Source of the DNA: Pelomyxa schiedti
Taxonomy: Eukaryota; Protista; Evosea
Reading direction: 5' to 3'
DNA: 64,000 nucleotides
Assembly (NCBI GenBank): GCA_020536535.1
Contig: JAHLWZ010000381.1
Coordinates: 1 to 64,000, forward strand
Below are positions 9,794 to 53,848 of the stretch, piece by piece. How positions within the stretch are numbered: position 1 is the stretch's first letter; the number at the start of each line of letters is the position of its first letter. The position numbers were made by a program, and so were the translations under genes. The notes under the pieces are model-generated. The model saw only the letters and a list, made by a program, of their open reading frames with translations, was not told where the DNA came from and searched no databases.

Positions 9794-12700
9794 ATGGCGT
9801 CAACGGGCGGGTGCTGCGTGCTGCTGTGCGTGGGTAGTGTGGACACAAAAAAGAAGGCAAGGAGTCAACTGCGTGAGTGTGTCAACAAAGTGAAAGGCTT
9901 CACCACAAGTTTCGTCTTCGGCCCAAAGGTCCGTGCGTGCTTTGGTTGTGTTTTTTTTTGGTTTTTTTGTTTTGTTTTTTGTGTTTTGGTTTTTTGCTTT
10001 TGGTTGTCTGTGATCATGTTAATTTTTTTTTCTCTTGGTTGTGTGGACTGCACAGGTGACACACGTAGTCGTTGACGATGTCGGCTGGAGGATATTTTCT
10101 ATTTCTCCAAGGAAGATTGACTTGATAAAGAGATTGCGGATACACGTGGTGAGTTGGATGTTTGAAATTTCCGGAATCTTGTTAGCCACCTTTTTTTTAC
10201 GACTCTATTTGAATTAGGTTACACCTGCCTTTTTAGATGCCTGTACATCAAATAGCAGAATTATGGAATGCTCAGATTTTGTGTATAATACTGTGAAGGA
10301 GGTTGTACTGAGCACAGAACCTCAGATATACTTGCCACCACAAGAACCAGACCCTGTACCTCCTGCGCCTGCTGCCTCCAGGGATACTTATATTCGAAGG
10401 GAAGTCATTGTTCCCTACAAATCCAAAGATGACCCTTTTAATGAAGCGGGTGCCTGGCTCGTTCAACACCATCTACTGCAAAAGCCATCATGGTTAGATC
10501 ATTTTCGTTTCTAAGTATCCCTCTTTTCTAATTCGTTTCTAGCTTGGTGAAACTAGAATTGCATACCCGCAGCTCTTCTGATAATGCTTGGCGTGTGTAT
10601 GAAGAAGTTGTGCCATGCCTTTCCACTGTGCCACCACAGACAAATACTCAGGGGAAATCAAAAAAGACCATCTCCCAACCAACACACAGGAGGCTGAGCC
10701 ATCTCTTAGCCTCGGCCTCAGAGGCTATTTCTGTGTACTCCGCTCTCTATGAGAATTATACCAACGTTGAAGGCTACACCCGCGTTGGAATACCTCCGTT
10801 TTCTTCCTTGGGATCAGATTTGGTATATGCTTCTCCAACGTTCTTTTTTTAACTATTAAAAGATAGGTAATGGATTAAGTCCCGGGTCTGTTCTTCCTGC
10901 AATGATATCACAGCTTGTGCAAGTCATTTTTAACGGTCAGTGATGATAGAACTCTGTTTTCGAATAACATTTTTCAGCTTCATCTTCTAAGTTTGCTGGC
11001 TTGAATACTATGACACTGGATATATCATTAGACACTCTAAATGAGGCAGAGGCTATTCTATGGTCCCTGCAAGAGCTTAGCCTTTCCAATCAACAAGGCT
11101 CTCCGAAATTCATTGAGGTATGGCACTTGAACTCGATCTTTCTCTGTGTAAATTATTTTAACAGCTAAATGATAAACTTTCCTCGTTGCTCCCATTTAGT
11201 GATCAGCACATAACCTCAAATGAAGCATTGCTTGAGAAATATGAGTTCATCCAAACTCTAAAAGATTCTCTTTGCCTGAATGAAGGTACCCACTAAACGT
11301 GCATATTTAAGCTAATTTTCACCAGGGATCACACTTCCAGGCAGTTCTGTACAGTCCAACTCCATCATAGATATGCATTACCGCAGTCTCAATTGTCGTT
11401 TGGAATATACAGATGATCCTGCTGTGAGAGAGCTAACTTCCCGTGTCCAAGCCTCTCTAACATCAGCCCCTACCTTGCTACACGTGGAACATGTGTTTCA
11501 TGTTGCGCGCCCTTCGGAAAATGAAGTCTTTTCTAATGTGGGTAATGTGAAACTTCTATTTCACGGTACCAAAGTGGAGCGGGTAGCTGGTATTCTTTCA
11601 CATGGACTGGTTTTACCAAAGGTTTCCCTCAAAGCAATTCGATCTATTTTCTCAGTGCCTTAGGTTTCTGTAACTAAACTTGGAATCAAGAGAGTGGATG
11701 CTGGCCAACTTGGGGTGCACATTTGTTTCGTTTAGTTTCGTTTTACATGCCCTACAGAATGGTATATACTTTGCAACAGATGCCGCTGTAAGTGCTAAAT
11801 ACTGTAACTCTTTTGGGGAAACGTCGTTCCTATTGGTGGCTTCAGTTTCCTTAGGCAAATCTATGGATACACCAGCTCCACGAGTAGGAACCACTGCCGA
11901 CACTTTACCCAACGGGTATCTGGAAATTCGAAGGGAATTTATTCTCTAATATGTTTCTTCAGATTCCACAGTGTGCACTCCATCCCGAGGCATACCGACC
12001 CCAACTCGGCCTTCGAGGATGAGGAATTCTGTGTACCTCTCCCAATTTGTGAAACTGCATCATGACCACCGACAGGTATTTGATAGCCGACAAATAATCC
12101 TGGAATACATTATCCAACTTACAAAAGCCCCTAAATCAATACCATCAACACTACCAATGCCGTCTTTTCCACAAGTTTCAATCTCTGATCCAACCACCGC
12201 CCCAGACGATCTGAAGTCTATTTTTCTTGCACCACCTTCTCTCAGCGTTTCACCCACGAAAAAGCAATCTCCTGTATACCCGGTTTTGATTGGTCAAGGC
12301 GGAGTACGTTTTTCAGTTGAAAGTACAACTGTGGCAGCCAGAATACTTGATTTAGTGGCTGAAGTTGTAGTTATTCAACATTTTAGCAATACTGGCGTTG
12401 TAGCTTGTGAAGCGAAGTATATATGCCCAATAGATAGCCATGGTTGTATATCTGCCCCCACAATACTCTAACCTCTCCTAGCTGCTGTTTGTGCTTTCGA
12501 ATGTTACATAAATGACAAGCATGTAGTGGCACACATAGAAGAAAAAGGTCTTTTTCTTTTTTTATTGTGCCAATTGAAACAATGTCAAATATTAGGTAAG
12601 GCTCGAAAAGAATACAAAGAAGGTACACGTTTGTGCTTGACTTTTTTGTAACTTATAAGAATACAGCAATTGAGCAAGGGCATGGAGCGTAGGTAAGCCA

Positions 12701-15700
12701 GATTCCTTCTACTTCTTTACCTCTATTAGGTATTTACTCGAAGAAGAATCCCCAGATGCATGGTGCATGTCTCTTGGAAATCTTCCAGGCATATCTTGCC
12801 ATGATGTTCTTACTTCCTCTTATTCTTCAAAGCAAACGCCGAAATTGTTGTTAAAATTACATATGTGGAAGACCTGGCTTTAGCATCTAATGGGGTAAGT
12901 CCGTCAAAAGTAGTGAAATTTGTGTCTAATCAACAATACTCAGATTACCTTTACCTTACCTGCGGCTCTTGCCGGCCGTGAGGACCGTCTCAATAGTGTA
13001 ACAACAACCCAAACGGCAGTTGCAACAGTTATCAAAGTATGCTCCAAACAACTAGGGTAGGTATCTCATTTAGTCAGGCTCATTCCAGCGCGCCGTCATT
13101 CCATTTGGAAGCGGGAATTACTATGCCCTATGACATCACTGGCATCACTTCACCATCTCATTTGAAAGATGTTCAAGTGAAACACACCAACACAAAGGCA
13201 ACTGTCAGGGCTTTAATGACGGAACTTACAGCAGACTTTGTACTACTTATTTCTATCAAGAACGCCCATGAACCCCGAATGTGGTTGGAAGTAAAGGACT
13301 CATCTCTACTGCTTTTTACTTAACACTTTCAGGTGGATGATACACAAAACTGGGCAGCGATGATTTCTATATCCCCAGATTTTCAAAATTATATACAGTC
13401 TGCCTGTCAGAGCAGATCTGAGGTCATATTCGTGGTTGACAGGTCCATAAGCATGGCCTCCAATCTTGCAACTTTACGTTGGGCTCTTCAGGTAATCAGA
13501 TGGATGATTTTGCACTCTCACGAAACTCAGATACTCATATCCCAACTGGGAAGTGAGGATATGTTTAATGTAGTTGGATTTGGATCCCACTTTGAGTCGT
13601 TATTTGTACAGTCGCAATCTGCAACTTCCGCCAAACCTGTCGGGTACAGATATGCCCAAATGTTACAAGCCACCTTTGGGGGTACTTCCCGTCACCATAC
13701 CTCCCTCCCCAAGCTTAATCACCTTTTTCAACAGGCACAAATCTTTACTCTGTTCTCAGAGCAGTGTTTTCTCTTGGTCAATCCAATGACTTCTCTTCAA
13801 GAACAGTAATCCTTCTCACTGATGGCCTTTTTGACATTTTTCCCGTATTGCCCATAGTGAAAAGGTGGAGAGACTCCTTGTATCTCAGTATTAAATCTGT
13901 TTAGTGCCCGGGCTCACACCAAACTATTTACTGTTGGAATCGGGGAGGCATCCAGGCATTCTATTTGCACCCTTGCACGGATAGGTGGGGGATGCTGTCA
14001 GTTCGTTCCATCCAATCCCTCACCCAAACATGAGAAACTGTTGAATCACATGTTAGCACAACGAAATCAAAATGTGGCTTCCCTAAATTTGGAACATTCT
14101 TATACTGTTTTAGACTTTATCTGGTATAAACATCAAGTGGCACACAACACACACAATTAAGCAAGTACCCTCTGAAATTTACAATATGTTTCAGAATCAG
14201 GTTTTCCTCCAAGACTAGTTTTCCTTTTTCTAACACATTAAAGTCTTATACTATTTATGGTCTCCTTAGTGGCATATGTAACCAGGTGTCAATTCAGGGG
14301 AATATCGGAGCACAGTTTTACCCTCACCCAATAAATTAGTGGTAATCGAGAGCAGGGAGTTTTCCACAACAGTGTCATCAAGTGAACTTACTGCTACACA
14401 TGGCACATTGATTCACAAACTGGCAGCCAGAGAGCTTATTCGAGATTGGGGGGAAAATTCTCTCCACGAACAGGATACAGAGCACTTTGTACAAAAAAAT
14501 AATATGGTTTCAGATGTTATTGCTCTAAGTAAAAAGTATGGATATCAAAATACAAAAATGGAGTTAGGATAGTAATATACTACAAAAAGGTATGGCTTCA
14601 TCACTCCTTTTACTTCTTTTGTGGCAGTGGAAGAGAGAAACCGTAATGACGCCTTAGTTTTGAAAGCACCTTCAGTGAAAGAGATTGTATCAGAGTCTAA
14701 ATTTTTGTACTTCCTTTGACTGCCAACAGCTGCAAGGCCATGACGTCGATGAAATCAAAGAAATTGCTTGGGAGCATGACCTTGAACCAGTCCCAAAGAA
14801 GGACGAACTTCAGAAACAACGAGATTCAAATTCCTTTTCCATTGCTCTTTATGGTGACCCACAGACTGGTATAAAAACTCACCCACACTTTTACCTCCTA
14901 AGACATCTCAAGGTAAAACAGCTTGGCTAAAACGCATGGTTTTTCCTTCAAATTTGCAACCCAATCCCCATTTATACAACTACAGCTGAGCGGGGAGTTT
15001 GAGCACAAATACATTGTAACCCAGGAGCCAGAGCAATTCAAACTGACTCTAAGTACAAATCGAGGTGCTATCCACTTTAATTTGTACGACATGCCTGGTG
15101 TAGCTACCAGCACAGCAACCCCTCCTACTGCCCATGATGGTAGTATAGTCTTCTTTGACGTTACTTCTCGCGCGTCATATAAAAATCTGCCCATCTGGTA
15201 CATGAAGGCTGGAAGCACTTCCGGTTCACCTACAAGTCCAGTTGTTGTATTTGTTGGCAATAAAGTGGACTGCTCAGAACGGAAACTTCATGCTCGACAA
15301 ATTGTCTTTCATAAGAAAAAGGTATTGGCTCTCCTTTCTCAAGTGTCTTCCTGATTGCCAATTTAGAATTGCAAGTACTATGACCTAAGGTACCTCCTTT
15401 TATGATATCCACTCTTAAGTATTTACTCTTTAGTGTTAAATCTTCGTACAACCTGGAGTCACCTCTACTAAGTCTTGCCCGGTCCCTTTTATGGTTGTGC
15501 ACAATCCTTCTCCCTGAATTTAATTCTTCTCAGTGACCCACAATTGGAGTTTGTTCAAGAAGTGGCACTTGCTCCACCTGAAGTAACTTTGGATCAGGCA
15601 TTAATAAAGAGGTGGGAACAGGATTTAGCTGATGCAGCATCAATCCCCCTTCCCGATGAGGATGATGACTTTGGAGGCACTGTTCCATCCAGTGCTGTCG

Positions 15701-17971
15701 CTCCTCAGCATGCAGTGCCGTCCAGTACCTTTGATTTCGCTCTCCGACCAAGCAAAGAAAAAAGTGCACCAGGTCCAACAGGCTTTTTCAGTCAATCTGC
15801 TACAGTTCCATCTGTGCAAGCTTCTGTTACCCATTCAGTACCATCTCTTTTTAGCTCTCCAGTTGCACCTTCCTTTAATTTCGCTTCACAAGCCACTACC
15901 TCTCGAGGGTTATTTTCTCCCCAAGGACAAGTGACGTCAACTCAACCTTCTCCTCTATTTGGCGCACCTCTGCCCTCCTATACTCCACCGGCCCCGTCAC
16001 CTTTTGGTAGTTCTTCATCATTGTTTTCTGGCAGTTCGTTTGGATCTCAACCACAACCTTCTACCGCTGCATTTGGCACTGCAAGCACTTCTTCACTTTT
16101 TGGCGGATCCCAACAGGTACCTGCCTCGAGTGGGGGCGCTGTGAGTGCGTTTGGAGCTCTAGCATCTCCTACTTCCGTTTTTCCACAGGCATCATTTGGC
16201 ATGGCAAGCCCTGCAATGTCCACTACAATCCCTGCAGCCACTTGTTGTCTGCCGTCCATCTTTCCTGCAGCCAGTTCTACTACTTCCACTCTCTTTTCTG
16301 CACCACAAATATTTCCCTCGGCCGCATCTTCCACAGCACAGTTGTTCCCAGCGCCTCAATTGTCCTCTTTCCCAACATTCAGTCTACCGGCCACTCCTGC
16401 AGCCAGTTGTACGTCCACCTTCAGTCTACAGGCCTTTCCTGCAGCCAGTTCTACTACTTCCACTCTCTTTTCTACACCACAAGTATTTTCCTCTGCACCA
16501 ACTTCCGTAACGGCGTTGCCGCCGGCGCAGCAATTACCGTCTTCCGCCACTTTTGCTCCACCCACTACTCCACAGCTCAGGTCTCCACATCCTGGGACTG
16601 GAACAATTTCATTTGCAGCTGCCAGAGCGCGAAGCAAGGCATTTCAAAATAGGAAACACTCTGAATCAGATATTAGTAATACAAGCAAGTCTTCAATTGA
16701 CCCTCCCTTGCCTCCGTTCTGCTGCCGTGCTTGTTGCAGCCCCTCCACACTCAGTGATTCCCAATTGCAGTTTGTACTTAAGGGACCTAAGAATACGAAG
16801 AGGATCTGGGGTGTGTGCTGGATGGATGCCGTTCTTGCATTAGCATCAACCTTGTCACCTTTACGTGACTGGGCATGTTGTACTAGGAACGGAGAACCTC
16901 CTATTGGCTATGCTGGCAGCTTACTTGAGTGTATCACATCATTTTTCCGCTGTTGGATGTAAGTAATTCATCAACCTATCAATGTTTCAACCCCTTAAGA
17001 TCTGAGGACGTAGGAAGTGTAACTTACAATAAGTATCTGAATACGACACACAAACGCACAGCAAGCAAATTTTCCGATCTCGGATTCGCCGAAGGAAAGC
17101 CACAGTGCGTTGTCAAGGCACTCAATTGCTTGATTGAGGAAGCTTCACTATTTATTACAGAGGTAGGTAGAACATTCATGCTTTCCCTTACAAGCATGAC
17201 TGTACAGGTACGAGACATTATTACTGTGCCCTCCACAAATCTTGGGGAGATCCTCACACGTAAATTGGAACAAATAATTCCGCAAATAATCACAATTTCA
17301 GAGTTTACTGTTGCAAGTGCACCTCCAAAGTGGATCATATGTATAAATAGTACATGCAGGAAGATACCTCGTACCACTTTATACCAATACAAGCTAGGTC
17401 TAATTTGATTTTGATAGGGATACCAGACGATTGTGCCTATGTTTTGCATTCTTTCATTGTATTTGAACCCATTGGGAAGTATTTTGACATGCCGGTGAAT
17501 CACTTTGTTACCGTATCCCCCGACCAGAAGGGCTACTGGATATACGATGATCTGTTGTGCCTCACTCCTGGAGGTCTGTGCTCCCCGCACCATGCTTTCC
17601 ACACAGTCGATTCTAATGCCGTAACAACAACAGAATGGCAAGGCGGATTCTGTTCGTGGGACTCTCCGGACAGTACCCAAACATTCAAGAAACTCCGTTC
17701 CAAAGTTCCTGTGAGCACTCCTGATCCCAACCAACACCCTTCTCATGCCAACACATATAATGACCAAACATTAGGTTTTCATTCTACGGCACCAAGATGT
17801 CCCTTGGCCACCAACAAGTACCTACCAGGCTCCTCGTTTGCGCTCCGAACAGTTCTCACAGTACTGAACTCCAACATTCTAAGCATAAAACAGAGAAGCA
17901 TAAAGTTTCGTTTTTTTTTCATGTACACATTCCACACGGCCAAGACACAAAATCTGGTCCGTTCAGAATAA
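9794..17971 (+). CDS. PARP4 (vault PARP)-like protein fused to a Ran-like GTPase, an FG-rich region and a USP-fold (USPL1-like) isopeptidase; 3' end approximate
   Basis: BRCT (GPK|VTHVVVDD), PARP (LLFHGT, GIYFA, AFEDEEF), VIT (AEVVVIQHFSN..EAKYICPID), vWA (IFVVDRSISM), PARP4-like FTSFVAVEER..DVDEIKEIAW, then Ran motifs, FG repeats and Cys/His boxes. The domain junctions lie inside exons. Confidence 0.8.
11373..12120 (+). other. PARP catalytic domain with an intact H-Y-E triad
   Basis: KLLFHGT (His), GIYFATDAAVSAKY (Tyr), FHSVHS..NSAFEDEEF|..QIILEYII (Glu); resembles the human PARP4 motif DFEDDEFVVY..VKMKYII as I recall it. Confidence 0.85.
14830..15670 (+). other. Ran-like small GTPase domain including the C-terminal acidic tail
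   Basis: GDPQTGKT (spliced), LSGEFEHKYIVT, TNRGAIHFNLYDMPG, FDVTSRASYKNLPIW, GNKVD, IVFHKKK|NCKYYDLSVKSSYNLE, DPQLEFVQEVALAPPEVTLD..LPDEDDDF; colinear with Ran throughout. Confidence 0.9.
16260..16488 (+). repeat. Internal ~55-bp direct repeat (16260-16314 and 16434-16488) in the S/T/P/A-rich linker
   Basis: CTTTCCTGCAGCCAGTTCTACTACTTCCACTCTCTTTTCT(G/A)CACCACAA(A/G)TATTT occurs twice, 174 nt apart; encodes FPAASSTTSTLFS(A/T)PQ. Confidence 0.9.
16780..17650 (+). other. USP-fold cysteine isopeptidase domain (C19/C98, USPL1-like)
   Basis: Cys box GPKNTKRIWGVCWMDAVLALASTLSPLRDW (Cys 16816); His box YVLHSFIVF..VNHFVTVSPDQKGYWIYDDL (His 17501, Asp 17546); linked by GT-AG introns that preserve frame. 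Confidence 0.65.
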
Positions 17972-18356: not shown

Positions 18357-20702
18357 ATGAAGGGCAAAAAGGGTAGCAGCGGCCACAGTGGAAAGACGAC
18401 CAAGTCTACGTCGACTACGTCTACGTCCACAACCACGTCATCGTCGTCCACCACATCCAAGAGGAAGAGGCCGAGACACGACGCTCGCGAGGAGGNNNNN
18501 NNNNNNNNNNNNNNNNNNNNNNNNNNNNNNNNNNNNNNNNNNNNNNNNNNNNNNNNNNNNNNNNNNNNNNNNNNNNNNNNNNNNNNNNNNNNNNNAGCAG
18601 CGGCCACAGTGGAAAGACGACCAAGTCTACGTCGACTACGTCTACGTCCACAACCACGTCATCGTCGTCCACCACATCCAAGAGGAAGAGGCCGAGACAC
18701 GACGCTCGCGAGGAGGAGGAAGAGGAGGATGACATCATGGTCGACACAGACTCCCCTCACTTGAAAAGTGCGTTGTCGTTGGGGTTGTTTGTTTTTTTTT
18801 TTTTTTTTTCCCTTTTCCCTTTTTTTCCCCCATTATTCCCCCCTTTTTTTAACCATCTCAACAAGTATGGTTTGGTTCTCGTATTTTTTTTTATTTACCA
18901 CTAGTACGATGTTCTTAAATATTTTTTCTTTTCCCTATTAATGTAGTTTAGGGTTGATTCAGGAAGAATACAAGTTATGGAAGAAAAATGCCCCATTTTT
19001 GTACGATATTGTGATTACCCATGCTCTTGAATGGCCATCCAACACTATATCTTGGTTACCAGACAAAATTGAGTGCGTTGCATTTTTTTTTTTTTTTTTT
19101 CTCCCTTTCTTGAATAACAAAACCCTCAACAACAGTACGAAAGATCGGGCAATTACCGAGAAAAGATTGCTACTTGGAACTCTTACAAATGGAACAGACC
19201 AGAATTATCTCATGCTTGGCAGAGTTAAACTTCCCAACGAAAGTTTACAAACTGAATCTGACCGGGAAGGTAGGTGCTTTACGACCTCTTTTTATGGTGT
19301 AATTTAGGTTTGTTAGATTACAGAATGGTCTCAGACAGAATTGAAATTTTTCAGAAAATTCGCCATGATGGTGATGTGAACAGGTAGTGGGAGTCTGTTA
19401 ATTGACCTAATCCTTGACCAGAGCCCGCTCTATGCCACAAAATCATCATCTGATTGCAACCAAGTCCTCCCTCTCGGAAGTGACTATTTTCGATACATCC
19501 AAACATACCGTAACCACCGAACCACCAGGGAAAGTGAAACCACAAATACGGCTTGGCGGTCACACAAAAGAAGGGTCTGTTACTGTGGCAGAATTTCTTT
19601 CCTTACAGTGTCAAGATACGGGCTTGCATGGAACCCAATAAGAAGTGGGATGTTGATCAGTGGTTCAGAAGATTGCTTGATTTGCATGTGGGATATAAAT
19701 GCACGCTCTGCAACACAACCAGTATCACCGAGTAACATATTTAAAGGACACTCTAGTGCTGTGGAGGTACTCCTGTGGATTTTTGGCTCCTAACAAACCT
19801 TGATAACATAAATGCAGGATGTTGCGTGGCATGTAAAACAAGAACATGTTTTTGGATCAGTAGGAGACGATAAACAACTTTTAATGTTGGTATTTCCCTC
19901 CCTCTCGCTTAGCATTTCCACCTGACATACCTCCTAAAAGGTGGGACATAAGAGAGCCAAGTAGATTCGTTCAATCTGTAGTGGCTCATAAAATGGATGT
20001 TCATAGTATTGCTTTCAATCCATTTTGTGAGCACCTCCTTGCTACCTCTTCCGCTGATAAGGTTTGAACAGGAAACTTGAACTTATTATTAAACATTCTT
20101 CCAGACCGTTGCTCTTTGGGACCTTCGTAATCTCAAATCCAGACTTTACGAGCTAGTTGGGCACAGCGATGAAGTTCTTCCTATCGCCTGGTCACCTCAC
20201 TGCGAGTCTGTGATAGGTTCTGCTGGTAGAGACAGGTTTATTTCTCTTTACTACTTTACAAGGCTTTTACCGGAATCACCAGACGTTTGCATGTGTGGGA
20301 CCTCAGCAGAATCGGAGACAAGCAAACCGCCGAAGAAGCAGCAGACGGACCGCCCGAGCTTTTGGTAAGAGTGCATTTGTCCTCATTTGTTCTGATTGCT
20401 GTTGCTAGTTCATTCATGGAGGTCACACTGGCTCCGTGGTCGATTTTGCCTTCGACACCCGTGATCCGTGGCTTATGTCATCAGTCGCGGAAGGCAACAT
20501 TCTTCAGACGTGGAAGATGGTATCTCATCCAACCCGTCGCCCTTCTAATCATTCATTCCACTTACCGATGCTCCTACAGGCTGAGACTATTTTTTCTGAG
20601 TGTGCCTTTACCACCCTTTCACCTGCCCCCACATCAACCGCCTCAACAACAAGCACTAGCACCACCACATCAACAAGTGCCGCAGCAAAGAAAGGTACCT
20701 GA
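18357..20702 (+). CDS. RBBP4: Histone-binding WD40 protein RBBP4/RBBP7/MSI1 family, with Ser/Thr-rich termini
   Basis: [59 protein letters not shown]|[29 protein letters not shown]|FIHGGHT. Exon 1 is interrupted by a gap with a duplicated flank. Confidence 0.93.
18376..18715. other. Scaffold gap (18496-18595) with an exactly duplicated ~120-bp flank (assembly overlap artefact)
   Basis: 18376-18495 is repeated at 18596-18715 across the 100 N. Confidence 0.9.
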
Positions 20703-22636: not shown

Positions 22637-23570
22637 ATGGGGAAGTCTCTTCGAAACTGTGAGTGCTTTCTGTTTCTTACGGTTTCGAAAAACCACGAGA
22701 GTGATACTTTCCTTTTTTTTTTTTACAGGGAGCAAAACGGTGAAGACTCCTCGTCGGCCGTTTGAAAAGGAGAGGCTGGATCACGAGCTTCGCCTTTGTG
22801 GTATAAATCCATACTTTTCATGGCACTGTGTCACCACAAAGAATTGCAGCGAAGAGACTCACGTGAAACTAGGGGAGTATGGGCTAAGATGCAAACGTGA
22901 GGTGTGGCGCGTTCATTATGCTCTGACAAAAATCAGAGGAGCAGCTCGAGAGTTGCTCAAACTTGACGAGATTGATCCAAAGAGAATTTTCGAAGGCAAT
23001 GCTATGCTTCGGTATATCATCACTTTCTTTTATTTGTCTATTTTGTTTTGTTCTATTTCTTACTTTGTTTCAGACGGCTGCACAGAATTGGTGTTCTTGA
23101 CGAGAGCAAAAACAAGGTATCTTTATGAAGAATAAAGGAAACCACCTCACAGTAATTTAAAACAAAGCTGGATCATGTTCTGAGTTTGAAAGAACAAGAT
23201 TTTATGGAGCGACGTCTCCAGACACTTGTTTTGAAGCAAGGTCTGGCAAAGTCGGTGCATCACGCACGTGTGCTCATTCGCCAACGCCACATCCGGTTTG
23301 CAACACCTATTTTCACCAAAAGCTTTACTCTTATCTCGTTTCAGTGTCGGAAAGCAAATAGTAACTTCCCCATCCTTCATGGTTCGAGTATCTTCCCAAG
23401 GTCATATAGACTTTTCTCTCACAAGTGCATACGCTGGTGGCCGCATAGGAAGAGTGAAACGCAAGCGGGCCAAAATCGCAAAAGAACTTGCAGCTGTCCT
23501 TGCAGAAACTGGTGAAGCTGCTGAAGCTGAAGGTGAAGCAACAGCTGAACCAGCCTCAGAAGACCTCTAA
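22637..23570 (+). CDS. RPS9: 40S ribosomal protein S9 (uS4), divergent from RPL8
   Basis: [66 protein letters not shown]|[14 protein letters not shown]; acidic C-terminal tail. Confidence 0.97.
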
Positions 23571-43535: not shown

Positions 43536-46500
43536 TCACGGTCGCTGTTCGTCATGGTCCGCCTTTTCCTTCCCCTTGTCTGCCTTTGCCCTCACTGCAC
43601 CGAGGGAACCACCATCCTCGTTTTCTTCTTCTTCCTCCTCCTCCTCCTGCCCCTTGTCATTCTCATCCTCATCGTCATCCTCGTCGTGGTGGTGGCGATT
43701 GCTCCTTTGCACCCCCCTGGTGCCGGACGATGACTTGGCGCCAAAGGGCAGGGGCCTTGTGCAGCACCCCACGTGCACCACCATGTTGGGGCACTTTGTG
43801 CACCTGTAGTAGTGCTCCTGGCCGCCCTCGATCAGCCCAGAGCACTGGGCGCACCGCAGTTCCTCGTTGTCTGTCCCTTCCTCCTCGTCGTTGTTGTCGT
43901 CGTCGTCTTCATCTTCACCTTGTGGTTTTGGAGGCGCGGCTTCCTTGAGCTCCAGGGGGTGCTTGTGAGTCCTGACGTTGATCATCGGCGGGAGCGGGGT
44001 CGATGCGCCCGAGCACCCGACGTGGCAGAACGCATGACAGGAACTGCAGAAATAGACTCCGCCTTCTTTGCCCTCACCACCATCGCCACAAGCACAGCAC
44101 ACGCCGCTGAGGTCCTTGGGGGCCTTGCCGAACTGGAGCGGGTGCTTGTGCTTGCTGTTGAGGATGATCCACTTCTGCGGGTTCTGCGGGTTCTCGAGGC
44201 ACTCGACGTGGAAGAAAACGTTCTCGGTGTGGCACTTGTACGCCCACGCGGGTCCCGGTTTTGGCTTGTTGCAGTGGTGGCACGTGAACTCGCCGCTGCT
44301 CAGGACCAGCTGCACTGGGTGTGTGTCTTGGTTGCACTTCTTCCACGTCAGTGGCTTCCCCTCGACGTCGGGAAGTTCCGTGGCTGACAGACAACACCCC
44401 ACGTGGAGAGTGTGTTTATCCAGCTTGCAATAATAAAACTGCTCCTGCCGGATGGCCTCGCATTTGTTGCAGGACTCCTCACAACGGCGAGACTTGAGTG
44501 AAAGTGGATGAGGGTGTGCCGATTCACCTGATTCGAGTACCCACTTTGGGAGTTCATGAGGCTCTCCGGCACACTGTGGGTGGAAATAAACACCTTCCGG
44601 TTTGCACACTTTGCACTCGAGTGCCCAACATGATCCCGGTTTCTCGCACTGGCAACACTGGAAGTCCTTCATGAACACCATTTTCAACAGGTGTGGATGT
44701 TCTGCGAATTTCTTCCAGTTATTTGGCTCTGATACGGGATCGGGAAGTGTCTCATAGGATTGCTTCATAATGCATTCAACCTCCACAAGGTACGCATCTT
44801 CACCTTCACAGACAGGACAAGCATAATTTTGCCCGGAGAAATATTTACTGCAGAGACTGCACAGAACGTTGCTCTGGGAACCTCCAAGTTTGAGAGGGTG
44901 TTTGTGTACTTCAACCTTCACCCACTTGGACAAGCCGTGAGGCTCACCAATGCAGGAAGGCTCAAAGTACAGGCCTCTCTTGGGACAGTGATAAACCCAG
45001 CCCCCTTGTTCTTTTTTCTTTTTGCACTGCCCACACTGATAAGAGCCGCTCTTGAATACCAACTGGAGTGGTGTTTCATGTCCGTCAAACATGCTCCATG
45101 AGAATGGAGTGTTTGGTTTTGGTGGTGGCTCTACTTCAGGAGAGTCGAGGCAGACTTCGATCACAAACGTGGAAGAGCATCGTTTGCAGGTATACCCAAT
45201 GCGGGGACTCTCCCGGTCCAGACGAACTGGGTGCTCATCACCTTCGTATAAAATCCATTCTGGCAACTCATAGGCGCCTGATGTGCACCGTGGATGGAAG
45301 TCCAGACTGTCCAATTCACAGTGATATTCCAATCCCGATCCAGGCTCTGAGCATTCCGAACAAACGAACTGTGGGCTTGACCGCAACTCGAGAGGGTGTT
45401 TGTGTGACTTAAACCTCATCCACTTGACAGAGTCGACGGACCATGGGAACTTGAGGTGGGCGAAAGCTTTGAAGAGAACATGAAGAGAATGTTTGGCCAC
45501 CACCTCACCTTGTTGTGGGTTAAGAACCACGATCGTGGGTTCACCTGTTTGAAGAGAGAAAGAAAAAAACGAATGTGAGGAGGGTCAATAATGAAACAAG
45601 AAAGGAGGGAACAGACATGGAGTGACATCAAACAGATCCACGAGAGTCTCTTGCAACTCCCTTTCGTCAAACTGGAGATGTGACCATCCATTGACATCCC
45701 TTGGGGCATTGGTTTTGAACAGTCTTGCGGAGCGATCACAGGAGATCTCAATGATGGAGAACGTGTTCTTTGGTTGTTCTTGAATGAGAGATTCATACTG
45801 CTCTCTTAGAGTTGTTGTGCATTTTTTGCCCCTTGGATTGGAATAATTCGAGAAGAACAAACCCAGGAACTTGGGCATCTGCTTTGGTTTGCTTTGTGCT
45901 GAAGTCCACACTACGGACTTCAGTTTTTCAACTTGTGCAAGAACGACGCTGGGATCTACCTCCCTCTCCATTTTGAGTGCCCCAATGATTGCACGTGACT
46001 TCAGAAGGCTTTTGCTTTCCACAGTGAGGCCTTTGACTGTTTGCACGCTTGCATAAGCAGCAACAAGAGGCTGCATCGTGTGGCCTGTTCTGTGAACCAA
46101 AGTGACATCGATGTCTCTCCAGACTCCAGGTTCAACACGAATAAAGTGGATGTCCCTTCCAGCAACAACAACAAGCATGTTGTCACCTGCTGCTGTGAGG
46201 GAGAATATCTGTCCGGAAAATGGACCCAACGTGAGGACGCACCTCCTTGGATATACCAACTGCCAGAATAAAATCGTTGAGTTTACTGTGGCGATGGCTG
46301 CCACTTCACCCTTCAACAACAGGCACCATGGCCCATCTTTCACTATGGTAATCAGCTTTTTCTCGAAATAGCCTATTTCTTCCCTGGGTTGTTCCTTAAG
46401 AAAGTTAATATTAATTTCAGGATCACAACTGTTTGCTATTAGCCCCCCACCCAGAACCAGGTTGAGGTCTAATGCGTATAAAATGCGCTCAGTCAAGAAT

Positions 46501-49500
46501 AGCTGAATTCGACTTTCACTGTTGGGGAAACCGATTTTGTCGGTCAGATGTTTCCTCACGGAATCATATGAAAAACTGTAGTGCAAAATCTCAGGAGAAA
46601 TTAATCCATCGGCAGTAACTTCTGGAAAAATAAAAACAGGTGAGGGATTGGACTCCACTCGTGTAATTGTGTGTGCCTCCTGGTCAATGATCATGGTAAT
46701 GTTGGATTCCTGGTTGGGGTTGGTGGTGAGGAGTATCACTGATTTCCAAGACGGGGAGACAACAACCGAGTTCCAATCCACCCTTTGCAGTGGAAGCTTG
46801 ATTGGTTGCTCTGCTACCAAGTTTGGTGTTGAAACGCCCCCAGTTTCCATTGATGATATATCATCACCCTCCCTCTCAGGCCCACGGTTTCCTCCAAAAA
46901 TCAAGTTCAGTACGCAGAACAGATTGTGTGGATCCATCGGGATGTCTTGGTCAGAGAAAACAACAAACCTTTCTTCACCAGTTGTGTCTGAGCCTTTGGT
47001 GTTGTTCTCTTCAGCTGTACCTTTCTTTCTTGTGAGAGCAATACCAAGCTTCACAGCCACCTCAGCTTCCTTTGATGGGAAGAAAGCTAAAGCTTTGATG
47101 TCGTGCCCGGTGAGTGTATTGTTGTGCTGGACGACTGCACCGCTGTTTAAATCCCAAACAAAGACAGTGGAGGAGTCACACCCAGCAAGGAACCTTCCAT
47201 CAGAGGAGAAGCATAGATGTGAATTAAGCGTGTTTGCCATGTCGAAGCCATTTGGAAGGGGCAACTTTTTGAGACCATCACTTGTCCACATCTCATGCAC
47301 AAAACCCCACTCGGGCGATGTCTCGGCATCCTCCACGTGTTCCCCTCTTTCTTCGTCTGAAGGTGGGTGTTTCCCAGGCTCGGAAGTACCCTTTTCTTTT
47401 GACTTGGCTGATGACGAACGGGAGTGCCGCTTACTGTCAGTTTCCTTTGCTTTTGCTGGCCTCCTTGTGGCTGTCAGTACTTTGGATTTGCAAGCAGCAA
47501 TACAGTGGCAAGGCCAACTCTCAGTGACCTGCAGATTTCTGGGCAACGCTTTGATCTCATAAATCTGGGAGTCTCCCAAATAACCAAGTGTGTCTTCACC
47601 AGTGAAGAAGCACTTTTGTGCCACGTCGCAGTTTACACTCTGCGACTCGACGTGCAGCAACTGTGTCCCAGCAAGAAGCCATGTCCCTTTGGGTGAGAAA
47701 GAGAGGACAGAGAAGAATCGAGGATCACTGACTTGGTGCTCAAAAAGCATGTGGAATGAATGCAAGTCCTTCTCAGAGAACTCCCACACCGTCACCTTTC
47801 CTGTTTGTTTGGAAAATCCGGCCAGTTTGTTTCTTGTTGGTGACACAGCAAACATTGAAATTCCACTCCCAATGTTCGTGGGTGTGTCTTTTAGTGGCGG
47901 TGGGGTGCTTGAGAGTTCCCCCGGTACCCCCCAGAATGGAGGACTCTTGTTCGTTGTCAGCAAAAGAGAAGACCCAATGAAAAAGTGAGCAAAGCAACCA
48001 TCGAGGACGTGCTGTGGAAGTACAACCACCCCTGCCTGTGCACTCTCTGTAACTGCTGTTGTGGTCTCTTTTACTGAGCCATCAGGTGAAGCTGGGGCGG
48101 GCAGGGAAAATATGAACGTTGCCGAACGTTCTTCCACTTCTTTTGAAATCGTGAGAACAGTGGAATCTGATGAGAAGCAAATGCTTTTGATTACGGCAGC
48201 TGACGAACCACATAGAGCTGATGATATTCCAGTCTTTGATGATGCCGAACCTTTTTTCAGTTCCATGGATTTCGGAAGGTCGACATTGACGCAGGTATTG
48301 GAGGGAATGTCCAGAACCAACACAGATTGATGATGCTCTTCATGCACAACCAGGCATATTTTCTTTCCATCAGGAGAGAATTTGCACTGGTCGCACTTAA
48401 CTTCGGGGCCCACTTCTTTGAATTCTAGGTCCTCGTCATTGACATCACACAACAGTGGGTGGCCTTTGTTGCGTGGGCATGCACACAACCTCGTTCCGTC
48501 CACAGTCACATCAACGCAGGCAAGGCCCACACCAAAATCGAAGGCAACCCTCTCATTGAAGCTCACGCCTGTCATGTTGCAGTTTCTGAGGTCGGCACCA
48601 CACAACCACACCTGCCCCATTTTGCAGTCACTGAAATCGGCCCTCACCAAATCTGCACCACCAAATATTCCACTGCTCAGGTCTGCACTGTTGATGTGAA
48701 TGCAACGCAAGTCCACGTTGGAGAAGTTTTGTTTTCCTTGAATAAGAAGCATCATCGCAGTTGATGCTGCTCTGTCAGCCCTGTCTAACCTCGCTTTGTT
48801 GTTGCCGTTGGAACGGTTTGTCCACTTTGAGTTCTCAACGAGGAGGAGGAGTGCTTTTCGCAGACTGAATGCATCTTCCACTGCGTCATCCCTCCTCATC
48901 ATCTCCAGTAAAAATCTGATAACGTCGTTGACTTTGACAAGCGTATACTGATTTATAAGGAGTTCTTTTGGATATTTCACAACCTTCGTTCTTCTTCCCT
49001 GCTCTTTTGCAGCTTGCATCTTCCTCAACCTCCTTCGAAGGTCGATAACAACGCTCAAGCTTGGTCTGAAGTTATTTTTTGTGACTGTGTAGTCGACCTC
49101 TTCTTCAAGGTGCATCTCAGGCTTCAGTGTTCTGGAGAGAACCGATTCGCAAGCCTCTTTAACACTGCTGACTTCAGTGGTTCTGCTAGAGCTCATTTCT
49201 TCCAGGATGTCAGCTATGACTTTTTCCTTGTCAATAGAGGAACCCTTCTGTGCCTCAGGGTGGGAGTGAGCCTCTTTGATCTTCTTCATCCATTTGTCAA
49301 GACGTTGCCTTCCCCCAATCGCAGAAAGTATCTTGGCCAAAATTTCTCTGAGTCTCTTGAAATTTTCCTCCTGTTGCTGGTCCGAGGTGGCAGCAGTAGA
49401 GGCTGAATCGTCTGTGTTTGTGGCAGTAACTGTGGAGCTGGTTGCAGCCTTACCAGAAGAGGTGCTTTCGGGTGGGATTTGTTGCTTGGCAACCGCAGTT

Positions 49501-52500
49501 TCTTCATCACCAGAGGTGGTGCCGACAATCGGCGTTGCAGAGTTGCTCTCACTTGGTGTGCTGGTGCTTGGTGGCAACACACGATACTCCAAAAAGCAAT
49601 CCTTGCAGATCTTAAAGTCGCATTTGTAACAATACCAACCATTGGCATCAGGATTCCAAGACTCACGTACAGCTTGACAGCAGTCACATGCCCAACAGTA
49701 AGACATGCCCTGAGTAGCCCAGTCACAGGCGAATTGTGGCATGTATTCCATCTTGTGGTCATGGATAGACACTTCGGCCAGGACAAGAGGAGGGGGATGT
49801 GCCATCAGGAGGAGTGCGTCTTTGTGTTGCTTGAAAATCATTTTAACCCCATAAAATGGATCATCAGCCGGCTCTGAAACATTGTCAGTTGGACCCATCA
49901 TGGTTTCAAAGAACTTTGTGTACTCATCGTGACCTTCCACTGCTGGCAACCACTGGACTTTTTCACTGATTTCCTCAACAATCGCACTCACAATCTCGTG
50001 AGCTGTCTCGCGGTAGTTGCTCTGCATGAACTTTATTGTCTCCCTGCACTTCACTTGCGGAAAGTTCGAGAATGGCATGCTGGAACAGAGTTGGATCTCC
50101 TTGTAAATCTTGTAAGCAATGAAGTATTCCTGAAGCGACTTGTGGAGGAACATGAACGTGTTGGCTCCCTTCTTCTGAACAGGACACCCAGACAGGACGA
50201 GTTGGGTGCTCCTGTTCGTGGGGCTGAAGAACCTCTCGAGTGGGTTGTTCTGATCGATCACCTCGACACCCTGGCTGTTCAGTGTCCACACGGGACTGTA
50301 TTGAAGTGCTGTCGCTCCCTTCGTGAACATGAAGATCGCGAGGTTCTCGGAGAACGACCTGAAGTCCTCGATGATGTCACCACCAACCTGGAAGTTGAAC
50401 TTGACCTCCTCGACGTCGTCGGTGAGGTGCTGAGTGCACTGTGCCATCCTCTCTGGTGTGATCTTCGACTTTTGCCTCTGGAACCACTGTTCCACGAACC
50501 TGTCATAAAGTTCAAGCCTCGTCAGGTTCGTTGACAGCTCCATCGACAATGCCGGCGCACTGTTTCCGCTGTTGCTGCTGTCGTCGAACCTCTTCCTGCT
50601 CCTGTCCTGCTCCATCTGGTCGACGAGGGTGGGGAGGATTTCCATGAACATTGTGAGGATGAACGGAGTCCTCAGCAGCTCCTCCACACCTTTCAGGAGT
50701 TCCTTGTGTTGGTTGAACAGGTCCGCGCTTCTCTTGCCCTGAGACCCTCCAAACGTGGAGTATTTTTCGACGTATTCCTTGATTTTGTGCCGTGTGAATG
50801 GTTCGATAAACCAGCACAGAACTTCTGGCTGCTCGGCAACCTGTATGGTTGTGTCTGATGACTTGCCAAGAGGACCACCAACAGAAGGAGGGACTCGCCA
50901 GTCAGTTTGAGCGCTTCCACTTGCTCCTGCCACTGTGGTTGTCGCAGCAGATTTTCCATGCTTAGTGCCGCTGGAACCACCAAGGCAACAGAAACTCTGG
51001 AAGAAATTTTGCCCAATCTTCTCAGGCCTGCTGGACACCAAGACCTGAGAGTGTTTCCAGTCACCAAGTTTGTTGGCTTGGCAGATGTTCACACCAACCT
51101 CGAGGGTGATCTCGTCATAACCATCGAGGATGAACAACACACGCCTCCCTTCCTTGATTTCATCAATGTTGCTCTGCGAGAACCCAAGTGATGTCAATGC
51201 CTCTTGCTTGGGTTCTTGATTGTTGCAAGTGAGATGAAGATCGGGATGACGTGGCACCTGTCATACGACTCCCACAGGAGTTTTTCCACAAAGTGCCCGA
51301 ATGTTGACTTTCCAGTTCCACCAGGACCAACAAGGACAAGTGTTTTGGTTGGCGGTGGGGCTGCGGCTGCTGTGCTTGTTGTCTCTGTTGTTGTTGAAGA
51401 CGAGGATGAGGAAGAGGAGGAATGAGACCTCCCACTGTGGTGGCGATGAGACTGTGACGTGACTGGAGGATCCAGTTTCAGTAATTTTTTGAACAGGGTG
51501 TCAGTCAACGGTGGTGTAGCCTTGTCAAGGACGCCCTCCCTGCAATTGCTTTCAACGTATGTCTTGAGTAGAGTATCGAGCTGTGGATCTTCCAAAGTGC
51601 GCTTCCTGAGATCCATCACCTGGTCATCAACAGAGTCTTTGAGTGTTGCCAACACCTCCGCCTTGGCTTTCATGAACAGTTCTGATGTGCACAAAGAGTC
51701 TTCTGCTACCGCGGTTTGCGGTTTGGTGGGTGGAATCAACATCTTGAACTGGAAAATTGGGTGTATATCGTTGTTGGCACTTACTGGTACCGGCAGTGTG
51801 GGAGGAATTGGGTGGGTTTGGAGGAAAAACAGGAAACTGAGTTTCACCGGGCTCAAGTGTGCCTTTGCCTGTGCTGAAAAGTGTGCATCGCTCTTGTTCA
51901 ACTTGTCATCAAAGCAACTGATCACTTCTGCTGTTGGTCGCTCTTTTGGGCGTGGAGCAGCAAGAGTTTTCTCGGAAAGGAGGATGCGTTCTGCTGGACC
52001 AGTTTCCTTGGGTGCAACGTACCACCATTGTCCCTTTTCTGAAAGGTAAATCAGTGCCGGGCAATCAATATCGGAGCACGAACTCTCAAACTGGCTCTTC
52101 CGAGGGTAACACGCCAACCCAAAGTTGAGCCCGTTCTTGGTGTCTCTATTTGTCTGGTGTCTTGCCTCCTCTGTTTGGATGAAGTCCATCACTTCTTCCA
52201 GGATCTGCCAGGCAGTGCTTCCGATCGGAGGAGGCATCGTTGAATACTCACGAAGCTTGATGACCACCATCATCAATCCAACCTCCGAGTTGAAGAACTT
52301 CATCAGGGTGCTGTCGCGATAATCCTCACCAACAAGAATTCCCTTGAGCTGCGCCAGTGCCCAGTTCTTCATGTCGACGTTGTCGTGGAGCGGTTCAGAT
52401 TTGATTACGTTGTCGAGGAGATTGACGTATCCAAGGCTGAAGTCATGTTCACCTTCAATGATCGCATTGAGCTGGCTTGTAATCTCACTCGCTTTCCTTT

Positions 52501-53848
52501 TGAGAGTGTGTGCTGTGGTTAATATTGTATCCTTCACCTTGTTGCCTGCTTTAGCCAGTGTACCCATGATCACACCGGGCTTCGCCGAGTCACCAGAGGT
52601 TGATGGTGGTTCTGCCGTTGTTGCCTCCTCTTTTTTTGCCGCATCGGCTTCATCACGCAACTCTTCACTGTGACGAATGCCAACTTTCCTGGACTTGGAG
52701 TAAAGACGTTCGATGGTGCTCTTCAATTCCTTCTGTTTATCTGGATGCAACGGTTTGAGCTCCTTCGAACCGACAGTGAGCTGCCACAACATCAAGTCAA
52801 TGAAGAAAAGAACATCCATCCAAGACTTCTTGATGTAAATGTCGGCAACGCACTCCTTCAGCTCTGAGACACAGTTGAAAACCTCTCTGATGTCGTATTG
52901 CATGGCCAGATTTGCAATTGCGCCGACGGCCATGTACGCGTGACCAAGACGGGCGGCGACGTCGGCGAGGGGATCACCGTCATCTTGAATTCGCTGAAGA
53001 TTCTGCTTGGCAACTTCGGCCTCTGCGGCGACGTAACACTCGAGGCTCTTGTAATTCGCGTATCGGTCCTTCATCGCCTGGAGGATCCCGAGCGACTTCT
53101 TCTTGTCCTCCTCGTCGAGACCCCTCACGCCCGATGCCCACATCGCTCGGAGCAGCTTGTTGAACCCCTTGAGTATCTGAAACACCCTGTCTGCGTTCTG
53201 CTGTTGCGAGTGAAGTGTCTCGATCTTCGCGATGAGCATTCGATAGATCACGACGAGGTTCTCCACCGGAATGTGCCGCGACGAGCACTGGAAGAGAACC
53301 TCCGCCAGTCCCTCGATCATCGGAACGTCGAACAGCACGTTCTGGTCGATGGTGTTCGCGAGTGCTGTCACGAGCATCTGGACAACTTCCCCGTCGTCCA
53401 CCCTCGCAAGCTGTATGATCTCGCGGATGAGGGCAGGAGTCTTGCTTGGTGTCGAAACGAAGTTGTCGATCATCTTGATTGCCAGACTCTGAAGTGCCCT
53501 TTGGCCTACCTTGTCGTTGACGACCAGCGAACACATGAACTGTTCATCGGCATCGGAATTCTCCAAATCAGCTTTCGCACCCAAAACAGCCTGGGATGTT
53601 GGCACTGGAAAATACTCCGAGACGAAGGACTTCGTAGTGTCGAACATCCTTCTGAGGATGTTCTTCTTCACCTCCGCTTTGCCTTCAGGAGCTGGAGTTG
53701 GCACAGTTCCGCTTCCCATGGGCGGAGGTTGCTCGGCGGCCCTCTGGTGCTCAGCAGTCACGAAACACTCGAGCTTGTTGAACCTGTCCTCGACGAGTTT
53801 CTCTCGGTTGTATGCCAGTGCTGCTACCAGTTGTGCTCCTGATGTCAC
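43536..53848 (-). CDS. Giant STAND protein: helical N-domain - NACHT - DC1 insert - pentapeptide repeats - WD40 - nucleoredoxin-like Trx - ~9 DC1 zinc fingers; frame break at ~51200; true ATG not located
   Basis: Walker A LVLVGPGGTGKSTF; Walker B VLFILDGYDE; FLHKSLQEYF; pentapeptides ADLSSGIFGGADLVRADFSDCKMGQVWLCGADLRNCNMTGV; WD-like repeats; Trx FLGLFFS..IIEISCDRS..FDVTPC|EPTIVVL..FPW; repeated HxHPL..CxxC..YxC..FHxxC. Confidence 0.75.

Follow-up and report, generated by a model that had tools for sequence, protein, structure and literature searches.

Is a PARP4 gene that runs on into a Ran-like GTPase domain, an FG-like tract and a Cys-rich domain a single gene at all, and if so, what could such a combination be for? 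This question is raised by a locus of the anaerobic amoeba Pelomyxa schiedti, which lies within a 64,000-nucleotide stretch of DNA (the window in the following) whose coordinates are those of contig JAHLWZ010000381.1 in assembly GCA_020536535.1. GenBank lists the product, KAH3763470.1 (P0001), as 'protein mono-ADP-ribosyltransferase PARP4' [Pelomyxa schiedti] and names no further domain. A preliminary description, made from the DNA sequence alone, had read the locus as a chimera of PARP4, Ran, FG-repeat and isopeptidase parts. Here we show that it is one real, lineage-specific gene, in which a PARP4 core is followed by a complete but divergent Ran domain, and we discuss what the remaining C-terminal parts may be.

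What PARP4 does in the cell is still poorly understood, and vaults were proposed long ago to be connected with nuclear pores. Fusions of genes in nature, moreover, often unite cooperating proteins. Neither PARPs nor vaults are mentioned in the publication on the P. schiedti genome, which was assembled with SPAdes from single-cell amplified DNA, with RNA-seq read pairs used for scaffolding, and which averages 7.4 introns per gene (PMC8887013). Its gene models were predicted with Augustus and then improved with PASA/EVM using transcriptome data (PMC8887013).

Gene structure and PARP4 core

We rebuilt the exon map of the gene from the window, and its translation is an exact match to the 2087 amino acids (aa) of KAH3763470.1. 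The gene and the features of its PARP4 part are as follows:

9794..17867, + strand: whole gene, 39 coding exons, 2087 codons plus stop
9815..10244, + strand: BRCT domain, aa 8-85 (Pfam E 8.1e-5, 23.2 bits against a cutoff of 21.3, with the isolated N-terminus)
10887..12120, + strand: PARP helical (regulatory) and catalytic domains, aa 270-579; best PDB match human PARP4 (8sx1)
11553-11570, + strand: LLFHGT, with the His of the H-Y-E triad, aligned with the human PARP4 His
11761-11778, + strand: GIYFAT, with the Tyr of the triad, aligned with the human PARP4 Tyr
12021-12081, + strand: EEFCVF, split by an intron, with the Glu of the triad, aligned with the human PARP4 Glu
12319..12864, + strand: VIT domain, aa 646-755 (Pfam E 1.6e-31), aligned to human PARP4
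13420..14004, + strand: von Willebrand A (vWA) domain, aa 897-1047 (Pfam VWA_3 7.2e-14, VWA 1.6e-7), aligned to human PARP4
14005..14789, + strand: remaining ITIH-like region of PARP4, aa 1048-1235, its final part in exon 28

Of the 38 introns, 37 measure 39-69 nucleotides (nt) and one 127 nt, and the splice sites are GT-AG throughout, with a single GC-AG exception. This very short and uniform intron style is common to the PARP4, Ran and C-terminal parts, and no run of Ns falls within the gene. Exon 33 is by far the longest with 1425 nt, the remaining 38 exons measuring 22-367 nt. At the genome level, the single frame that the preliminary description had claimed for all four parts holds, and the Augustus/PASA/EVM model in GenBank is a single protein of 2087 aa. 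We consider it very likely that the fusion is present in the genome, and probable that it is also expressed as one polypeptide.

The N-terminal 1235 residues constitute a PARP4 core, composed of a BRCT domain, a helical domain, an H-Y-E catalytic domain, a VIT domain and a vWA domain. This assignment, which had already been proposed, is borne out both by Pfam and by the best PDB matches, which are to human PARP4. Pfam finds the PARP family at aa 411-579 (E 2.8e-22), and the helical and catalytic part matches human PARP4 with an E-value of 2.5e-33, compared to 6e-15 for PARP1. From aa 640 to aa 1235, the protein aligns continuously with residues 618-1217 of human PARP4 (E 1.7e-103). Given an intact H-Y-E triad and an intact catalytic domain of the PARP4 type, the ADP-ribose writing suggested for this part is plausible.

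Human PARP4, the vault PARP of clade 5, displays the same domain order and can be aligned over its residues ~257-566 and 618-1217. The differences lie at the C-terminus, where human PARP4 has a disordered linker and an MVP-interacting domain (1570-1724) (PMC10450202), whereas the Pelomyxa protein has Ran-like, FG-like and Cys-rich parts. The added module thus occupies the place of the MVP-binding region of human PARP4, in agreement with the preliminary description. A search for this MVP-interacting domain, with the C-terminal 631 residues (aa 1457-2087) against the full-length human PARP4 chain in the PDB, gave no match.

The junction between PARP4 and Ran

The transition from PARP4 to Ran, together with the Ran-like domain and its two microexons, is located at:

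14730..14868, + strand: exon 28, with PARP4-homologous codons, a 14-codon linker, and Ran strand 1 with the start of the P-loop
14832..15672, + strand: Ran-like GTPase domain, aa 1250-1456, exons 28-33 (PDB Ran, E 1.4e-54)
14913-14938, + strand: microexon of 26 nt with the rest of the P-loop and helix 1, restoring GKTAWLKRM
15367-15389, + strand: microexon of 23 nt, restoring the Ran motif NCKYYDL

Both homologies meet within exon 28. Its first 20 codons align to residues ~1199-1217 of human PARP4, in an alignment that continues through FTSFVAVEE into DVDE..IAWEHDLEP, the latter encoded by exon 28. After ~14 codons that separate the two homologies, the last 12 codons, in the same frame, encode the first strand of Ran and the beginning of its P-loop; the alignment with human Ran starts with the exon's terminus, SFSIALYGDPQT, at Ran residue 10. 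The claim that PARP4 and Ran are joined in one frame within a single exon therefore stands, while the start of this exon had to be corrected from ~14719 to 14730.

The structure around this exon bears on whether the Ran part could have a life of its own. The open frame that contains exon 28 (14679-14927) has no ATG between its upstream stop and the P-loop, while the first Met of the Ran part is located after the P-loop, so that the Ran domain cannot be produced alone from exon 28. Nor is there room for a separate promoter, given that the introns on either side of exon 28 span just 43 nt (intron 27, 14687-14729) and 44 nt (intron 28), and that no intron of the gene exceeds 127 nt. Retention of intron 27 would place a stop codon at 14717-14719, so a shorter, PARP4-only isoform is possible.

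The Ran-like domain

The domain is a full-length Ran homolog, as had been proposed, although it is spread over six exons. Its match to human Ran covers residues 10-215 and includes the Ran-only C-terminal helix and acidic tail. The domain is 47% identical to canonical fungal Ran and matches Pfam Ras with an E-value of 1.9e-17, and its best PDB sequence match is a Q69L Ran chain. An AlphaFold2 model, computed from an alignment of 56 Ran relatives, reached a predicted local distance difference test (pLDDT) score of 88, and its top 50 Foldseek matches are all Ran (template modeling score, TM, 0.7-0.8). Pfam, PDB sequence comparison and fold comparison hence agree on the assignment to Ran.

Five short GT-AG introns and the two microexons interrupt the Ran part, yet the frame is kept and the Ran motifs GKTAWLKRM and NCKYYDL are restored exactly, which speaks for a spliced coding sequence that has been maintained, and against a decayed retrocopy. 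An alternative splice donor for the Ran N-terminus, at 14912/14913, was rejected, as it breaks the P-loop (G-I-K-T); it is the 26-nt microexon that restores GKT and helix 1.

Ran requires Gln69 for GTP hydrolysis and employs switch II as much of the contact surface for RCC1, RanGAP, NTF2 and importin-beta. The motif state of the Pelomyxa domain is mixed in this respect. The nucleotide-binding motifs are kept, namely G1 (GDPQTGKT), the switch I Thr that contacts Mg and the gamma-phosphate (YIVTQ), the DxxG motif of G3 (DMPG) and G4 (GNKVD), with one change in G5, which reads SVK for SAK (LSVKS). Likewise, the basic patch FHKKK, the APPEV helix and the acidic tail DEDDDF are all retained, and in the C-terminal extension, 9 of the 10 columns that are at least 90% conserved in Ran are unchanged. 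At the position of the catalytic Gln69, by contrast, the domain has Val (DMPGV), and a Ser/Thr/Pro-rich loop stands in for switch II, matching the Ran consensus at just 4 of 16 positions. The domain had been described as a Ran-like switch, and this designation is not supported, given the loss of Gln69 and the replacement of switch II. We instead read it as a probable nucleotide-binding module that would hydrolyze GTP poorly and escape regulation. Judging from its retained tail and basic patch, it may bind to Ran-binding-domain proteins. In a quick tree of Ran domains, which was poorly resolved, it falls among long-branched Ran paralogs.

Compared to Ran/Gsp1, including the GTPase-deficient RanQ69L, the Pelomyxa domain thus shares the full length, the fold, G1, G4, the basic patch, the C-terminal helix and the acidic tail, and differs in residing inside a 2087-aa protein, in its Val for Gln, its replaced switch II and its SVK for SAK.

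A further set of divergent Ran domains came up in metagenome and Logan sequences. Four unlabeled protist proteins (P0004, P0005, P0006 and P0008) each have two tandem Ran-like domains, one of which has a non-canonical switch II. P0004 and P0006 end in FG-like low-complexity sequence, P0005 in a histone-H2A-like segment. The first domain of P0005 has AWLKR and a Thr/Ser-rich switch II in common with the Pelomyxa domain, at 38% identity. Unlike the Pelomyxa protein, these proteins have neither a PARP4 nor a Cys-rich domain, and the Pelomyxa domain has more identity with canonical Ran (47%) than with them (38%). They may represent an undescribed class of Ran paralogs.

The FG-like tract and the C-terminal domain

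The remaining parts of the protein are encoded at:

15534..16958, + strand: exon 33, from Ran through the FG-like tract to the Cys box, 475 open codons (chance ~2e-8)
15673..16704, + strand: FG-like tract of low complexity (aa 1457-1800) with abundant S, A, P, T and F
16747..17572, + strand: Cys-rich C-terminal domain, aa ~1815-2031, with a USP-like Cys box and a His box read from the protein
16816-16818, + strand: Cys1838 of the USP-like Cys box, exon 33 (motif reading)
17501-17503, + strand: His2008 of the His box, followed by Phe, with Asp2023/2024 at 17546-17551, exon 37 (motif reading)
17573..17867, + strand: predicted last two exons and stop, aa 2032-2087, without codon-usage signal

The second junction also lies inside an exon. 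As the preliminary description had claimed, a single frame joins the Ran tail, an FG-rich tract and a Cys box: exon 33 encodes in sequence the Ran C-terminal helix with the DEDDDF tail, an uncharged tract and the Cys-box motif. Its codon-usage score is +0.23 in the annotated frame and lower in the five others, four of which are negative. The disordered tract of this exon may have grown by internal expansion without intron gain, and no DNA tandem repeats were found within it.

The tract has 30 Phe residues and a stretch of 224 residues free of D, E, K and R. Seven FG dipeptides are concentrated within 81 residues (aa 1552-1632; 15958-16200), a number reached in 11 of 20,000 shuffles of the tract. 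In composition, the tract resembles the cohesive, uncharged FG domains of nucleoporins, though true FG motifs are few, and we therefore refer to it as FG-like. Pfam found no nucleoporin anchoring domain in the annotated protein, and elsewhere in the window we found no paralogs of the Ran, FG or end parts.

Following this tract, the C-terminal domain has motifs that would correspond to the order of Cys box, helical stretch and His box in USPL1 (C98) and the USP family (C19). In USPL1, the triad consists of Cys236, His456 and Asp472; Phe457 is important for function, and a zinc site formed by four Cys is conserved (PMC8983731). In an alignment drawn without a database match, the counterparts of His456, Phe457 and Asp472 would be His2008, the Phe next to it and the Asp at +15/+16, while the spacing between Cys and His is 170 aa in the gene model compared to 220 in USPL1. 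A PDB match to USP21 aligned exactly on the catalytic Cys box, at a noise-level E-value of 0.5; a narrower query matched nothing. USPL1 is itself in the PDB and was never matched in sequence searches with five cuts of the end domain, spliced and unspliced. Codon usage supports the annotated frame for aa 1885-2031. From these motifs, the domain could be a USP/USPL1-like isopeptidase, an assignment to which we give slightly less than an even chance.

The gene had been taken to extend to 17971, which turned out to be the end of an unspliced open reading frame (ORF); the annotated stop is at 17865-17867. An antisense ORF at 17024-17767 (- strand, 247 aa), considered as an alternative gene, has no Pfam match and no codon-usage signal and is probably not a gene.

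Occurrence and comparison with known systems

To place this architecture, we scanned 1.84 billion representative proteins with the Ran-like exon in HMMER. The sole near-identical match was KAH3763470.1 itself, with the Ran match at residues 1267-1382, and of the best 150 matches, no other protein exceeded 672 aa in length or had an E-value below 1e-30. A word-based search with the full-length protein returned just two unrelated PARP proteins, with low-complexity words swamping the candidates, and metagenome scans for related loci, with the Ran-to-end part and the PARP4 core, found none. In the representative, full-length, junction and metagenome searches together, no other protein with the same architecture appeared, and we found no description of it in literature searches, as the preliminary description had anticipated. 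Within these searches, no other large enzyme contained a complete Ran domain together with the acidic tail.

The fusion nevertheless has precedents. Clade 5 PARPs have expanded in Amoebozoa and have acquired varied C-terminal add-ons, including 14-3-3, actin and ubiquitin-related domains (Perina et al. 2014, PMC4245714). The Pelomyxa protein follows the same plan, a PARP4 chassis with a lineage-specific module after VIT/vWA, and a link to the ubiquitin system has already been noted for PARP4-like proteins of Acanthamoeba (PMC4245714). By comparison with the published descriptions, it differs in that no Ran, FG-like or USP-like add-on has been reported among amoebozoan PARP4-like proteins. As such add-ons were already known, the fusion is a further variant of a known pattern and not a wholly new kind of protein: it is a lineage-specific instance of the amoebozoan habit of swapping the C-terminal module of PARP4.

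A functional analogy, with no homology implied, is offered by RanBP2/Nup358. This giant protein combines contacts to the Ran system, FG repeats and an enzyme for ubiquitin-like modifiers at the nuclear pore, and the structure of the RanBP2/Ran/RanGAP1-SUMO/Ubc9 complex is among the Foldseek matches of the Ran-like model. It differs in having Ran-binding domains instead of a Ran domain, a SUMO E3 region instead of a protease, and no PARP.

Interpretation

What, then, might the exchanged end be for? On balance, we favor the reading of the locus as an 'address swap' fusion gene, in which the vault-docking end of PARP4 has been exchanged for a Ran-like/FG-like/Cys-rich module. The PARP4 chassis is kept, with its BRCT, helical and H-Y-E ADP-ribosyltransferase domains and the VIT/vWA domains of the ITIH-like region. 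Whereas the animal PARP4 end, with its disordered linker and MVP-interacting domain, docks in vaults, the Pelomyxa end would be a different, partner-binding address. This address would consist of a divergent Ran paralog with retained nucleotide motifs and C-terminal tail but lost Gln and switch II, an FG-like, presumably disordered and nearly charge-free tract of ~340 residues, and a Cys-rich domain of ~220-270 residues, possibly a USP/USPL1-like isopeptidase. The Ran-like domain would bind guanine nucleotide, hydrolyze it poorly and, not being cycled by RCC1 or RanGAP, serve as a fixed binding surface instead of a switch; its retained tail and basic patch could make contact with Ran-binding-domain proteins. 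For the FG-like tract, we propose weak, multivalent binding to nuclear transport receptors. The two parts together might direct the PARP4 core to the nuclear-transport machinery rather than to vaults, perhaps along with a deconjugating activity. That the module targets this machinery is a tentative proposal, and we would regard it as doubtful rather than likely. The karyopherin binding and the nuclear-pore setting put forward in the preliminary description likewise stay hypothetical. Even more speculatively, GTPase-dead Ran and FG parts could act as a bivalent trap, built into the protein, that catches importin-beta-type receptors or Ran-binding-domain proteins and so parks PARP4 and a USPL1-like ubiquitin/SUMO isopeptidase at nuclear pores; the protein would then be an analog of the RanBP2/Nup358 hub, assembled from different parts. 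We think this scenario, the analogy included, distinctly unlikely.

A number of points weigh against the favored reading. It concerns a single species and a draft genome assembled from amplified single-cell DNA, the sequence cluster of KAH3763470.1 has one member, and a search of 5.8 billion sequences for transcript-derived fragments across both junctions (aa 1130-1500) found no piece of the protein, only canonical Rans at 44-47% identity. No ortholog of the same architecture appeared in our searches. The loss of switch II weakens any claim of canonical binding to partners of the Ran pathway, and a nucleoporin-type domain would be expected to have more than seven FG dipeptides. Most of the objections concern the end domain. 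Pfam assigned no family to aa 1780-2087 or to the unspliced ORFs even at E 10, C19 and C98 included, and no homologs were found at E 1 among proteins of 358-1137 aa. Other cuts of the domain gave chance PDB matches to unrelated proteins at equal E-values. An AlphaFold2 model from the single sequence reached a pLDDT of 36, which is no usable fold and rendered the Foldseek output meaningless. The domain lacks the conserved zinc ribbon of USPL1 with its four Cys; between the boxes, a single Cys-x4-Cys pair is found in both the spliced and unspliced sequence. Of the protease Cys box claimed in the preliminary description, the motif is thus present but not shown to be above chance, profile searches did not assign a USP domain, and the removal of ubiquitin-like modifiers that had been ascribed to it goes back to two short motifs, the USP-like Cys box and the His box. 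Finally, the last two exons are uncertain. The predicted introns 17163-17207, 17260-17301 and 17574-17633 are free of stops and have lengths divisible by three, and they may be coding, in which case the annotated protein is 49 residues short. The last of them is intron 37; since it is in frame and stop-free, the true end of the protein may differ, and that of the model is provisional.

Other explanations for the locus differ in how much of the gene they accept. Over-merging would mean that a PARP4-like protein ends at 14717-14719, with the Ran/FG/end part rarely or never joined to it, or made from another start. Automatic models in draft protist genomes do often merge adjacent genes, and the 43-nt intron 27 provides the immediate stop if retained. 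A separate Ran product, however, would lack strand 1 and the P-loop, as there is no ATG upstream of the latter, exon 28 itself still encodes PARP4-homologous residues, and introns 27 and 28 (43 and 44 nt) are like those in the rest of the gene, whereas intergenic gaps on the contig measure ~150-230 nt. Separate products are therefore unlikely in our view. An assembly chimera, formed when multiple-displacement amplification joined unrelated loci, has the amplified single-cell DNA in its favor, but would hardly have produced two junctions within exons that both preserve the reading frame and the splice phase, with at most 14 codons between the homologies on either side, in a gene without N runs and with introns of uniform size and style; we give it next to no credence.

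If the fusion is accepted as real, its C-terminal half could still have another meaning. It might be a recently captured appendage that decays without function, a pseudo-domain, which would account for the lost catalytic Gln and switch II, the orphan end domain and the lack of orthologs in our searches. Yet an open frame of ~870 codons has been preserved despite 11 introns and two microexons, the Ran part still has its G1, G4, Mg-binding Thr and C-terminal tail, and both the FG tract and aa 1885-2031 display gene-like codon usage, all of which makes decay improbable. A better case can be made for a functional fusion unrelated to nuclear pores, composed of a pseudo-GTPase scaffold, an ordinary flexible linker and a novel non-protease module, and acting in the cytosol, at vaults or in signaling. 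The replaced switch II, the Val at position 69, the count of just seven FG dipeptides and the failed protease assignment are all compatible with it, and other amoebozoan PARP4-like proteins bear unrelated add-ons such as 14-3-3 and actin (PMC4245714). On the other hand, conservation within the domain is highest in the Ran C-terminal helix, basic patch and acidic tail (9 of 10 columns), which suggests a retained Ran-type interaction, and FG enrichment with a 224-residue charge-free run would be unusual for a plain linker. We consider this alternative possible, if less than probable.

Under the address-swap reading, the locus offers a testable lead. Since natural fusions often join cooperating proteins, a Ran paralog and an FG-like domain at the vault-docking end of PARP4 raise the question of whether PARP4 acts on or with the nuclear-transport machinery. 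If the bivalent trap were real, the protein would serve as a 'Rosetta stone' between the still enigmatic PARP4/vault system and nucleocytoplasmic transport, and if the end domain is a USPL1-like protease, enzymes of this type would be known well outside animals. In any case, the protein is a natural experiment on what a Ran body can still bind without a working switch II.

Genomic neighborhood

The neighbors of the fusion gene are unrelated to it. Upstream lies a gene for a 1455-aa proline-rich protein; downstream follow a small ORF rich in Ser and Thr, on the far side of a scaffold gap, then an RBBP4-like gene and genes for ribosomal proteins, and farther on very long intron-free ORFs and pieces of a ROCO kinase. 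Rfam and tRNA scans of the window gave no matches.

Some of these regions merit a comment. At 18357-18764, the same Ser/Thr/Lys-rich coding sequence flanks both sides of a gap of 100 Ns (18496-18595), so the contig ends joined there seem to overlap; the use of RNA-seq read pairs for scaffolding would explain such a gap (PMC8887013). Beyond it, an ORF at 18954-19307 (+ strand) encodes an RBBP4/CAF1C histone-H4-binding N-terminus (Pfam CAF1C_H4-bd, 1.6e-24) upstream of the annotated WD40 gene at 19432-20702, whose model is probably truncated at the N-terminus. On the - strand, 43536-53848 holds three very long uninterrupted ORFs of 664, 1890 and 884 aa, despite the genome average of 7.4 introns per gene, with five C1 domains, pentapeptide, WD40 and thioredoxin-like matches and an ARM-like repeat. 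The GC content of this region is 0.48-0.52, compared to ~0.42 around the PARP4 gene, and it could be a single giant gene with few introns, or else DNA of foreign or mobile origin. It is followed by long ORFs at 55341-59563 (- strand) with COR-A and protein kinase matches, which suggests a ROCO-type kinase gene. Lastly, two Ribosomal_S4 (RPS9 type) genes lie 22 kb apart on the + strand, at 179-732 and 22637-23570. The first encodes 83 aa, adjoins a run of Ns and may be a fragment or a duplicate.

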